A DNA stretch of 64,000 bases from Euprymna scolopes (Eukaryota): assembly GCA_053919585.1 (NCBI GenBank), contig CM132810.1. One strand, given 5' to 3'. The notes beneath the pieces are model-generated. The model was not told the DNA's origin. It did not search any database and saw only the letters and a list, made by a program, of their open reading frames with translations. Positions 24,601-45,600 of the stretch are shown one piece after another. The stretch's first letter is position 1, and each line of letters starts with the position of its first letter. A program made the position numbers and the translations under genes.

Positions 24601-27600
24601 TATATTTTTGCGTTATCGTATACACTTGTTTATATTTGAGGTTCACATAATGGCCGCTAGATGTCATTTCTCTTTCGAAGAACAGGGGTTGATAACCCAT
24701 CTGTTGCTAATATGTCACTGTCATGTAGAAGTGCCAAAACTTCAAATTATCAAAGAAAATTAAATAAAAAATGTTAGCAAAATACTTACAAAACGAGAAG
24801 AGTTGTCATTCTTAATGGTTTTGGCATTTCCAAAAGCTTCCAGAATCGGATTGGCTTGTAGAAGTTGATTTTCGAGCTCACCCTAAAGTCAAAACAAGCT
24901 TACAAATTTCAAATCAGTTTGGAGCAAGAATGAAACATTACATTTAAGGTTGTTCAGAAAATACTGGCCGATTTTTTTTACTTACCTTTAAAAGTTTGAT
25001 TTAGGTGGTTACCTTTTACAGTGATTTATACAAGCATTTACATGCTTAATACTTGAAATACATTTGCATTAATTTCAGAATACAATTTTAAACCGTATAT
25101 GTCCTTAATAACAAAGATAAAAAAGTGTATATGTATACTTTTCTTGCAGAGGAGAAGCCTCAACAAATGATTGGACAGTATGAGGATGGCTTCAGAATTT
25201 CCTTAGTGGTAAAATAAGAGCTTAAAAACAAAGATAGAAGACAGTTAAGCATTCTTAACACTGAAGAGTTGAAAACAATTGTTAAATGAAATTCATGCCC
25301 AAATGTCAAATAGTGTTTGGCCATGTGAAGAAAAATAGGATGAAAAAGCTGCATAAATGGGCCAGACATGAACTCCACGAATAAGAATTGTTTATGAAAT
25401 CGGTTGATATTTTCTGAACAACCTAATATACTCAGCTATTTCAAGGGAAAAAGGCTAGTGTTATGGTTAGATAACTAACCTACTCATGCATTTATACAAA
25501 AAAGTAATTATATTTTGATTAAAATGTATATCACTTCAATCGCTGCACCCCCTTCAAAATATATTTGAATCTTCAAATTTTTCAAAGATTTTTAACAAAG
25601 TTTTACTTTTTTCTTTATATTTACAAGCAGTGTTCCATTTCCCATGTAAATGTTTTGTAAAATTAATCTCCACCCCACTGTGTTAATCAGGGAAGCGAGA
25701 GGCAGAAAAAAAAATCTCAGGAAATTAAATACAGTTTTGATAGATTTATATAAAAATAAGTTATGTTTAATTTGGAAGCATTGCCTTGATTGATTGAAAG
25801 AATTGATGATTCTCAGGAATTTATTTGATGACAGTTGTAGAGAAGACTTAATTTGGATCTTCTGTATTTCCAAAAGATTGTATACTATCAATCAAAATAA
25901 ACACTACTGGGTTCATTTTACAAGAAATTTACATAGTGACCAGGAACTACCTTGTACATTGTAAGAAAAATACAATTGTTTTCATAGATATTTTACATAG
26001 TAAACTATTTAATATTTATGTCCAAAAGAATTTAACAAAATTTTTAAATCAAAATTGTTAAAAAGGGGAGTAAACTTGAAGATTTTTTTTTTGTTTTCAA
26101 CTTGAATTTCTTTAAAATTAAAAAAAAAAAGACATAAAATAATAGAAGACATATTTTACACATGAGAAATAAGGAATTAAAAAACAATGTAAAAACGGAG
26201 AAAAAAATGTATCCAAAGGCAGTCCTTTATGAAAACCTACTCATTTAATTTTGAAATGAAAACCTATTTTTATAAACACCATTGTATTTAGACAGTCAAT
26301 CCTGGAAGATTGATGTCAAAAGTAAGACTTGTAACTGAGACGAGACTAAAAGAGAAATTTCAGAAATCCATAAGAAAAGACTAAAGAGGTTAAACTGGAA
26401 CATTTTGAAAAGACGTTAAATGCATTGGCTTCCTTCAATTGTGAAAACAGCCAAATATGCTATTCTCACTTTTTTTTGTCACCATTTACCAAGGCCAAAA
26501 GGCACTTGAGGATAAGAGTTAATGAGATGGAATGATTGCTAATCGGAAGATGAATATTGAGAGGTTTGAAAATAATGAAGGAATGAACTTGTGGATACAG
26601 TTTATGACAAGTATTTGCTGACATTGGTTTTGAAAAACGATCCCGTTGAAATCTATGGTAGCAGTCCATGTTAATGTGTTTCATAGACAGGAAGTCCTTG
26701 CAAAATTCTGCCTGATGTTAAAGCACAATTAGGAAGAAAGGAAAGTTTTGCTTTTTCATAGGTTGTTGTAGCAAAACTAGTTCTTGCTAAAATGTTTTAC
26801 AAAGAGAAACCAGATATTTCAACTCCTTTCATAGAACTAATGATAGCAATGCCTCTTCTGAGAAAGGGATTGTAAGAAACAGAAGAGATCATTTCCCCAC
26901 AAAATTTCGAAGTCGATTTTGAAATCGAGGCAAGAAAGTGTGCTCACAACATTATTTCAGATGTGGTGGTAATAATTCATCTTTGAACATAGGATTTAAT
27001 TTGTTTTATAAGCTATCAACTCCTGCAATTTGGTCATTTTGATAAGTTTTTATATGCTTTAAGTTCTTAATATCTTTGAATAATTATTAATCCTCTAAAT
27101 GTATCTTTATAAAAATGGTTTGTAGAATAATTTGAGTGTTTGTGCAGTATATTAGGAAAAAAAATGCATTTTTAGTAAAAATCACAATTATGTACTTGTC
27201 ATGTCAAAGTCAGTAAAAATTCAAAAAAATAATAGAGTAAAAGATCTGCTAGAATTTGTTTTTGTAATAAATATTTTAATTTTTACTTCATTTTTCATAA
27301 TTTTAGGAATTTTTACTAATTTCAACATTAGATGCAAGTATGTAAGTGTTTTCACCTAAAATGCATTTATTTAAAATCATACGGCTCAAGTACCATAATT
27401 TGTTGGCATGTATTTTGTAAATTGTAGGAAGATGGAACTCTGAAAGGTACTAATACTTCAGGCAAGAATGAACCTGGGATTAATGACATCCAAAGAATAG
27501 CTAAACAATATAAAGCTCCTAAATTAAGGCCTCATCAGCAGATGTGGTTGATCATACAGATAACCTTTAATTTTTAAGTCTTCCAAAAATGAATGTTTTG

Positions 27601-42600: not shown

Positions 42601-45600
42601 TTAAATGCATTAACATTTAATTTATTATAAAAAAAAAAAAAAAAAAAATGAAAGCTTTTACCAAATAAAAAAATGTTACAAAATTAATGTAAAAATACTT
42701 TTGTAAGAAAGTTAATTAATGTCCTCATTAAAATTACTAATATAATTTCTAGTTTTGAAGCATAAAATATTACGTTTGGAGCAGTTTTTTTTTTTTTATT
42801 GGGGCAAAAAAAAAAAAAAAAAAAAAAAAAAAAACTTAAAATACTTTTTAGAAAAAAAAAAGATTAATTTAATTTTTAGTTATTTGTTAATGAAAATAGC
42901 AACAGATCTACTTTATGCAACATTTTAAAAAAATTTAAAAGCATATCTTTACATAGGCCTTAAGTTATACTTGTACCACATTCACTCAGGATGGATGGAG
43001 CCAGCTCCAAGTGAATTCACTGTATCAAGAGTCAAAGCAGTCCATCCAGGTCTGTTTAACCATTCCTAATTTCATCACCACACATCAAAGACACAAGGAC
43101 CAATTGCAGCTTCCAAATCAGCTTTGAAGTTCTCAGTTGACCATAACACTTGTACCATTCAATAAGTGGTGTTGGTGCTATTGTCTTGTGAATTAGGAGT
43201 TGCTAGCTGATGAAGTGCGTGCTCAAATCATCTGAGCCTCTTGATAAGTACTTCCTCAAGTTTAGGAAGCTTAACTCATGCATGAATTGTGGTATTTGAG
43301 ACATGGTTGGAGTGCTGAAGACACCACTGACCAAGGACTTCCAGCCTTTGAAAGTCAGATACTCACAGGGGCCAGGTTTTGCACCCATAAAGAAAAATTG
43401 TTTGAACAAGGGCCTGGTAGATGCAGCATTTGGTTGTTAGCTGGATTTCTTCAAGTTGTAGATCTCAGACTAGGAGGCGTTTAATATAGAACATTATGGA
43501 GCAAATAAAATATACATGTTTATCAAGATACTTGGAATAATTATTTTACTTTAATATTTAACTTGATTAAAAGAATTGTAGTGATCTATCAATTTAATGC
43601 AAGACAAAAAATTGTTTATAATAACAAAATTAAAATATACAGAAATGAAATGTTTGATATCAGCTTTTCATATTTTAATATTAATGATTCTTGCTTACAT
43701 GTACAAAAAAATGGAAAAATCCTTTTAACGTTAGTAAATATTAATCCAAGTTGTGTAATTTTAGAATGTGATAACTTTTAGACTTTTTTTTTTAAAGACA
43801 TCAAATACAAGCAATTGTGTTGCTATACTAACAAAGACACTAAATAGAGATAAGTTGACTATTGAAAAAGAACCATGGCATCCATTAAATAAACACACAT
43901 ACCGAACCATGAAGGTTTGCAACTGATGCTCGGTTGTTAGCTGCTCGAGAAGATGCTGCCACATACGCCAGATATTGGATGACTTTCTTGGTATTTTCAG
44001 TTTTTCCTGCTCCAGACTCACCTCTAAAAAAAAAAAAAAAAAAAAAAAATGTTTAATCATTACGAAAAGAGGTAGAAGAGACCTATTTCTAAAAGTTTCA
44101 TATTTTGACTTTTTTTTTTTGTGGAAGATAAGTTTGAACGTCCACATTTGTGGAAGAAAAAGTTTTTAGAATCCACATCAATCCACATTTCAGATTTTCC
44201 TCAGTCTCATCAGGAGGATGTGTTTCCATGTTCAACAACAAATACCAACTCCAACACTGTTTCAATGATCTTTTTCTTTCATCTTTTTTTCTGGCAGTGT
44301 CATTGTCTTTCACATTAGTGGCTGCCGATGGAGTTCACAGTGGCTCACAAGTACAAAAAATAAAATAGCTCAAAACAAATTCAAAGGAAACAAAAGACTC
44401 CAACATTCTGTATATGTTTGTTGGAACTGTAAGTGCATATGTGGCAAGACTCATTCTTTCAACATAAACATACCATTAGAGTATACTCTTTTGTAAACAT
44501 CTCCCTATACTGTCTAGATTTAATCTTCCTGAGGTCATCAGATGTAAGATTGTCTTCGAAACTTACATTACACATCCATCATATCATCCAGACATCATTT
44601 CTCTTCATGCAACACATGTCATCAATGTTCACTATCCAGGTATTATCACACTGCATGTACACATCTAATAAAGTTTTTTCTTTGTCAACAATAGCAACGC
44701 TCTGCTGGTTAGTAATAGAAGTTTCTTAAATTTATTCAATTCATTCTTAATTCTTACAATTACACTAACACCTGCTCCAACCTGTGCTCCAACAATATCA
44801 CTAAGCTAACAAAACTTTAACAGCCTCAATCGCTTTACCATCCAGATAAAATTTTTTCAGAGTTCTCATCAATCTGCATTGTTTTAAACTTCTTGCACAC
44901 AAATTGGTTATCCTCTCTTAGCATAACAAACATGAAAAATAACTTTATCTAACCCGTATTATCTAAGTCTTTGTCGTCATTTTTTTCTTTTAATCATTTT
45001 CCAAATTAAAATTTATTATTGCATTGTTTGGTCATCAACTTTTCTTTTCCAACAACTTAAAGATTAAAATAGCATATTTGTTTATAAAGTGAAGGAAATG
45101 CATTCTGGTAGATTTAAGTAAATTTTTTTTTTGTATTTTTGATTTCAATAAATCAAGTAACAGTCAATAAAAATGCAAGTCACATGCAGGTGTAAATACA
45201 GGCATATAAGTTATTTTATTATTTTTAGAGAGATAATGTTTTTCATTTGTTAGTGTAATTATATATACATTAAATAAAAAATATGCAAGACATTTAAAGT
45301 AGTACTAGTTTTATTACTTCATACATTTTATTTGTATAAAGTTAAGTACGTTCAAATTATCAAATTTGAAATATAACTACTAGGCATAAGGGTGGATAAT
45401 GTGGTCTATATTTCATTTTCTGTGAAATTTTATTAAGTATTAGACATCAATGAATACATATTCCCTAAACTTAAGCTTTAAAATATTTTACAGAATTTTA
45501 AGTAACATAACATGGGTACAACATCCCAATTGAAAATTCAAATATTTCAAATTTGATCCATAAACAATAAATACCAATTAAGCAAGATTGCCTGAATTTC

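Follow-up and report, generated by a model that had tools for sequence, protein, structure and literature searches.

A frame-preserving 48-nucleotide exon in the loop-1 gap of a myosin II heavy-chain gene of Euprymna scolopes

A 64,000-nucleotide (nt) stretch of the Euprymna scolopes genome (GenBank assembly GCA_053919585.1, contig CM132810.1), referred to here as the window, includes the motor-domain portion of a gene for a myosin II heavy chain, which runs on the minus strand. The gene is arranged as small exons separated by very long AT-rich introns (G+C content, GC, ~0.29). The surface loop known as loop 1 is encoded on both sides of a 19,020-nt, phase-0 gap at 24883-43902, between ...VANLHGS and GELENQ.... 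The P-loop exon (exon A) ends at 43903 with the donor ...CAT GGT TCG/gtatgt, and exon B begins at 24882 behind the acceptor ag/GGT GAG CTC. An earlier reading of the letters alone (the original prediction) took the gap to be one 19-kb phase-0 intron inside loop 1 and picked out four AG...GT-bounded, stop-free segments with lengths divisible by three. The gap and all four segments are present in the minus-strand gene as described:

43903-44023, minus strand: P-loop exon (exon A), GESGAGKT...VANLHGS, first half of loop 1; from sequence and PDB matches
35264-35281, minus strand: 18-nt candidate, TKELNL; good splice signals, without RNA support
35036-35083, minus strand: 48-nt segment, 16 codons, phase 0-0; RNA-confirmed exon
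34560-34583, minus strand: 24-nt candidate, TNVTTTLK; good splice signals, without RNA support
27776-27838, minus strand: 63-nt candidate, 21 amino acids; weak pyrimidine tract (0.60), without RNA support
24790-24882, minus strand: exon B, GELENQ...NSSRF, end of loop 1; from sequence

The P-loop exon was present in twenty small transcriptome-sized runs, and many RNA runs contained most of 34500-35350, which was unexpected. Reads or contigs of four runs were placed on window positions 32000-37999. Run X47 consists of raw stranded poly(A)+ reads, of which about 12% of the run was taken, and runs X19 and X28 are contigs from other studies. Of the X47 reads, 155 span a junction from the end of exon A (43903) to 35083, and 123 span one from 35036 to exon B (24882). 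The overhang at 35084 reads GAACCATGAAGG... and equals window 43904-43933 at the end of exon A, and the overhang at 35035 equals window 24852-24881 at the start of exon B. Agreement was 1.0 in both overhang consensuses, with all 155 acceptor-side overhangs corresponding to exon A and all 123 donor-side overhangs to exon B. The overhangs are offset by one base because a G is common to each exon end and the adjacent splice-site dinucleotide. With this offset removed, 43903 is joined to 35083 and 35036 to 24882, in exact agreement with the boundaries of the 48-nt segment. X19 and X28 both contain a 50-nt core contig (35035-35084), at depths of 10.4 and 217, respectively. Contigs extend from the 48-nt exon into exon A by 863 letters in X19 and 120 letters in X28; by our reading, the extension of exactly 120 letters beyond the junction in X28 places the first base of exon A at 44023. 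The acceptor-side junction is found in the contigs of both runs and the donor-side junction also in X28. Positions 35036-35083 are a real, frame-preserving exon that is spliced to both loop-1 neighbors in poly(A)+ RNA.

Both junctions occur in RNA, and the supposed 19-kb intron is therefore two introns:

35084-43902, minus strand: upstream intron, exon A to the 48-nt exon, 8,819 nt; 155 X47 reads plus X19 and X28 contigs
24883-35035, minus strand: downstream intron, 48-nt exon to exon B, 10,153 nt; 123 X47 reads

The exon is stop-free, has phase 0-0 and adds 16 residues to loop 1, so that the stretch between the conserved YVAAS and GELENQ lengthens from 16 to 32 residues. Its GC is 0.50, compared with 0.47 for exon A, 0.40 for exon B and ~0.29 for the intron. 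The original prediction proposed that loop 1 is built with additional small exons; this holds for the 48-nt segment, with its junctions on both sides, and a combinatorial array is not supported.

The acceptor of the 48-nt exon (...ttattattaacttag/) has a pyrimidine tract, and a branch-point-like TTCTAAC lies ~36 nt upstream of it. The donor is weak (AAG/GTTGGC). Two sequence features flank the exon:

35107-35332, minus strand: four GCAUG motifs, including two UGCAUG, that precede the acceptor by 24-250 nt
34980-35029, minus strand: U-rich tract (66% T) that immediately follows the weak donor

The U-rich tract is a possible splicing enhancer and the GCAUG cluster a possible set of Rbfox-type sites, as judged from sequence. 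GCATG and TGCATG motifs near the segments had been noted in the original prediction and are present; a density of four GCATG in 250 nt (here within 226 nt) was matched by 5 of 500 dinucleotide shuffles. Loops that resemble the host's and lack an insert occur in relatives, namely P0154 and P0155, which are intron-less, and the distant relative L010 (ENA ctg4635, a 1.95-Mb contig), whose A-to-B loop is AASSRTQQRTSVSSMHVQ followed by GELENQ. The 48-nt exon is read as a probably regulated cassette because of the weak donor, the U-rich tract, the GCAUG cluster and the complete insert-free loops of these relatives. The first three features suggest that inclusion depends on splicing factors, and a skipped form would also exist. 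By analogy with vertebrate loop-1 inserts, the 16 residues could tune nucleotide (adenosine diphosphate, ADP) release and motor speed.

The favored reading as a whole is that two introns flank a real 48-nt exon that adds 16 residues to loop 1, with the exon probably acting as a regulated cassette that may tune ADP release and speed. We assign it a probability of roughly 0.8. Several points weigh against it. Part of the insert is hydrophobic (MALFL), an unusual property for a flexible surface loop, and the suggested kinetic effect is pure analogy. The alternative status of the exon is an expectation, as the reads were placed on 32000-37999, away from the 43903-to-24882 junction. L010 has the same phase-0 loop-1 intron (17.9 kb, L010:517-18461) and an exon B that is 100% identical in amino acids. 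Its intron contains no nucleotide island and the candidate peptides score no higher there than shuffled ones, in a comparison that is near synonymous saturation (third positions ~0.5 different). The L010 comparison argues only against an ancient, sequence-conserved exon. Some RNA also reads through the weak donor, and X19 shows virtually equal depths for the unspliced downstream contig (10.5) and the exon core (10.4). Reading through the donor leads to a stop after 31 codons, and some inclusion products may be unproductive.

The 48-nt exon could instead be constitutive. Loop 1 would then be encoded by three exons without alternative splicing, and the gene model of the original prediction would simply be one exon short. 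The X19 and X28 contigs that link the 48-nt exon with exon A pass the exon A donor unbroken, and inclusion is read as the main form in these two runs because a comparably abundant skipping path would split the contigs. This graph-logic reading suggests predominant inclusion and fits the constitutive model, as does the abundance of inclusion in X47, where 12% of one run gave 155 and 123 junction reads; a direct junction of exon A with exon B was not observed. However, contigs drop minority paths and cannot show that skipping is absent, and reads of the direct junction cannot fall on the chosen stretch. A weak donor flanked by regulatory-looking motifs, relatives whose loops are complete without the insert, and the lack of a counterpart in the L010 intron also speak for a cassette, and a constitutive exon is considered unlikely. 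A different concern is that inclusion mainly marks unproductive or separate RNA, such as a composite terminal exon, a detained intron or an intronic sense transcript, in which case the exon would not define a functional protein isoform. The first ~3 kb of the downstream intron are partly retained or covered in poly(A)+ RNA. Sense-strand depth in X47 is 5-30x from 35035 down to at least 32000, the end of the placed stretch, versus ~0 at 35600-36400; the 2.4 kb above ~35600 are almost empty, with a weak tail of coverage to ~35500. In X33, two contigs at 32884-34250 have a depth of 250-330, which far exceeds the 27 in the bin of the 48-nt exon. The equal depths of unspliced contig and exon core in X19 and the read-through stop point the same way. 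Against this, the 123 clean splices to exon B in X47 compare with a read-through depth of ~5-20, about three quarters of the X28 signal is spliced (core 217 versus unspliced 53), and the exon preserves the frame. Genomic A-runs at ~33805-33820 and 33645-33690 can account for oligo-dT capture of intronic RNA. The downstream coverage could reflect slow intron removal behind the weak donor, capture at the A-runs, or an intronic transcript or alternative 3' end, and we consider it very unlikely that inclusion chiefly marks RNA of this kind.

The most elaborate model is that of the original prediction, in which one gene combines the 18-, 48-, 24- and 63-nt segments into as many as 16 forms of loop 1. 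Its caveat that chance yields such segments was borne out. The gap contains 436 AG...GT-bounded, stop-free segments of 9-90 nt with lengths divisible by three on the sense strand and 507 on the antisense strand, compared with 388 ± 23 in dinucleotide shuffles, and the bare observation is close to chance level. A stricter filter (pyrimidine tract, no upstream AG, near-consensus donor) leaves 4 segments on the sense strand and none on the antisense strand, while shuffles retain 0.66 ± 0.87 (P = 0.005). This enrichment of strong-signal candidates supports the model. The 18-nt and 24-nt segments are among the survivors, the former preceded by two UGCAUG motifs at a distance of 40-50 nt. The 48-nt and 63-nt segments fail the filter, although RNA confirms the 48-nt exon. 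Three of the segments do cluster in repeat-free sequence, as had been noted, spanning 722 bp within a region (34400-35450) that is single-copy in the 5.9-Gb genome and sits in a local GC rise (0.343).

The RNA does not bear out a combinatorial loop 1. All partners of the 48-nt exon in X47 are exon A upstream (155 of 155) and exon B downstream (123 of 123), with agreement of 1.0. No joints were found inside 32000-37999 in X47, which means neither 35264-to-35083 nor 35036-to-34583, and no reads in that stretch held two or more candidate exons together. None of the X47 donor-side overhangs led from the 48-nt exon to the 63-nt segment, which itself lies outside 32000-37999. Contigs were matched by 31-letter words, and exons shorter than 31 nt share no such word with the genome. 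None of the four candidates had a match in the orthologous intron of L010, a weak test in so diverged a relative. Some 400 such segments are expected by chance. The combinatorial model fails for every combination that involves the 48-nt exon, at least in X47, and we regard it as highly improbable. On present evidence, the 18-, 24- and 63-nt segments are chance or unused look-alikes. It is unlikely that the 18-nt segment, and perhaps the 24-nt segment, is a cell-type-restricted microexon that replaces the 48-nt exon, which would give at least three loop-1 variants under Rbfox-type control. If true, vertebrates and this mollusc would have arrived independently at the B1/C1 strategy, at one and the same intron position. 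The two other survivors of the filter, 31473-31544 (72 nt) and 28505-28516 (12 nt), both on the minus strand, are absent from the original list, and neither was a splice partner of the 48-nt exon in the X47 reads. An Rfam scan of the whole intron gave no match.

A phase-0 loop-1 intron just before GELExQ is common to several invertebrate relatives (L010 and P0004-P0010), and other invertebrates (P0154, P0155, P0216 and P0257) have no intron there. The closest database relatives lie on ~2-kb contigs and share only the exon, at 80% nucleotide identity. Protein matches were required to have 0.55-1.75 times the query length. Under this rule, an 88-residue query of the joined exons had no match of more than 79% identity and none from the species itself. 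Exon A alone, searched against the protein database (matches of 22-70 residues), returned only genomic reading frames of other species, and a representative search with exon A led to short genomic reading frames and nothing else. The 48-nt exon with its open downstream frame gave no candidate as a protein query. A likeness of the insert to AVKSDDTAK in P0009 was set aside: P0009 is a compact, muscle-type myosin with LEDQIV whose native loop has this sequence, and the resemblance is probably chance.

In myosin II, loop 1 is known to tune ADP release and speed. Its variants in vertebrates come from paralogues as well as from small inserts, neuronal or visceral, and alternative loop-1 exons are textbook knowledge for vertebrate MYH10, MYH14 and MYH11. 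The MYH10 B1 and MYH14 C1 inserts enter directly before GELE(R/N)Q, and a turtle myosin-10-like fragment (P0151) that reads ...PVSY and then GELERQ fits this insertion point. Mammalian B1 has 10 residues and C1 has 8, versus 16 in the mollusc exon, and the MYH10 B1 enhancer has GCAUG motifs, as are found near the 48-nt exon. B1 and C1 are loop-1 exons of vertebrates, and B1 raises actin-activated ATPase and motility (PMC3535348; PMC7566000). The 48-nt exon appears comparable by analogy to the B1, C1 and SM-B inserts. Like B1 and C1, it is inserted in loop 1 between the P-loop exon and the GELExQ exon, but it has no sequence similarity to them and its mollusc host seems to have a single such gene. 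MYH11 SM-B is likewise a loop-1 insert in the same myosin II clade, and myosin-11 is among the best PDB matches, whereas SM-B has 7 residues rather than 16 and no sequence relation to the exon. The effect of SM-B on ADP release and velocity has been measured in vertebrates.

Outside the vertebrates, Mansfield and colleagues reportedly described in 1996 an alternative 40-residue head exon of Drosophila zipper that is optional at the 25/50-kDa junction. That exon, from an arthropod, differs from the 48-nt exon in length and sequence. In that case an invertebrate loop-1 cassette would already be on record, with the 48-nt exon as a further lineage-specific case. Drosophila has one non-muscle myosin II gene (PMC3535348). 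A full-text literature search found no description of a zipper loop-1 exon, and no literature on loop-1 splicing in cephalopod or invertebrate non-muscle myosin was found. Molluscan and arthropod muscle myosin genes make several motor variants from one gene by exon choice near the nucleotide pocket, but they do so by mutually exclusive exon swaps in striated and catch-muscle myosins and not by an added non-muscle cassette.

The finding is modest and, in our own grading, unsurprising. It corrects the gene model by one extra exon and by two introns in place of one, and an RNA-seq-based annotation of the Euprymna scolopes genome may well include the 48-nt exon already. A well-expressed 16-residue loop-1 exon in an apparently single-gene mollusc would place an insert at the same intron position, and for the same purpose, outside the vertebrates. 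A motor with and without the 16 residues would be a simple system in which to ask whether loop-1 splicing is ancestral to the intron or was invented repeatedly.

The window ends at approximately motor residue 590, and the tail region of the protein is encoded beyond it. The remaining exons of the gene in the window are as follows, all from sequence:

58732-58887, minus strand: myosin exon TYSGLFCVV...AYRSMLQ
~49878-49907, minus strand: myosin exon of 10 residues
from 23984, minus strand: myosin exon GKFIRINFD...
down to ~1363, minus strand: further myosin exons, including LDIAGFE...

The best PDB matches of exon A are myosin-9, -11, -10 and -14. Scores for one exon are 85-90 bits for myosin-11, -9, -14 and -10, versus ~70 bits for skeletal, cardiac and scallop striated myosins. 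Among database proteins, a myosin-10-like one comes closest to the joined exons (79% identity). Database relatives contain PF00063, and the gene has the GESGAGKT P-loop and the conserved flanking exons. Sequence similarity thus assigns the gene to the non-muscle/smooth-muscle myosin II clade. The 5.9-Gb assembly contains one P-loop exon of the non-muscle type, a lower bound that fits the predicted single non-muscle myosin II gene. Two more P-loop exon copies lie 1.2 kb apart on the minus strand elsewhere in the assembly (G000:C40:55762227-55762313 and 55763470-55763565), with 76% and 63% identity to the P-loop exon of the non-muscle gene. The arrangement suggests a muscle myosin heavy-chain gene in which the two copies are mutually exclusive alternatives.

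A few minor features of the introns were recorded. In the downstream intron, 5 X47 molecules end at 34806, and X33 has an adapter-marked end at 34250. Loose read ends at 34272 and 34307 were rejected as splice junctions, as they belong to a short dispersed repeat at ~34234-34326 that has at least 40 copies genome-wide (71-97% identity). The repeat adjoins a polymorphic (GT)n/(GC)n tract, with variants at 34279, 34330 and 34336. Single-letter differences between RNA contigs and the assembly are T>C on the plus strand at 32857, 33977 and 36091, and A>G on the plus strand at 34336 and 35940. A plus-strand T>C would be A>G in minus-strand RNA, by editing or polymorphism. The upstream myosin introns contain mobile-element open reading frames at 54880-55620 (minus strand) and 59834-60443 (plus strand), which comprise a 246-residue gag-like protein with zinc-knuckle cysteines and fragments resembling the C-terminal part of reverse transcriptase.

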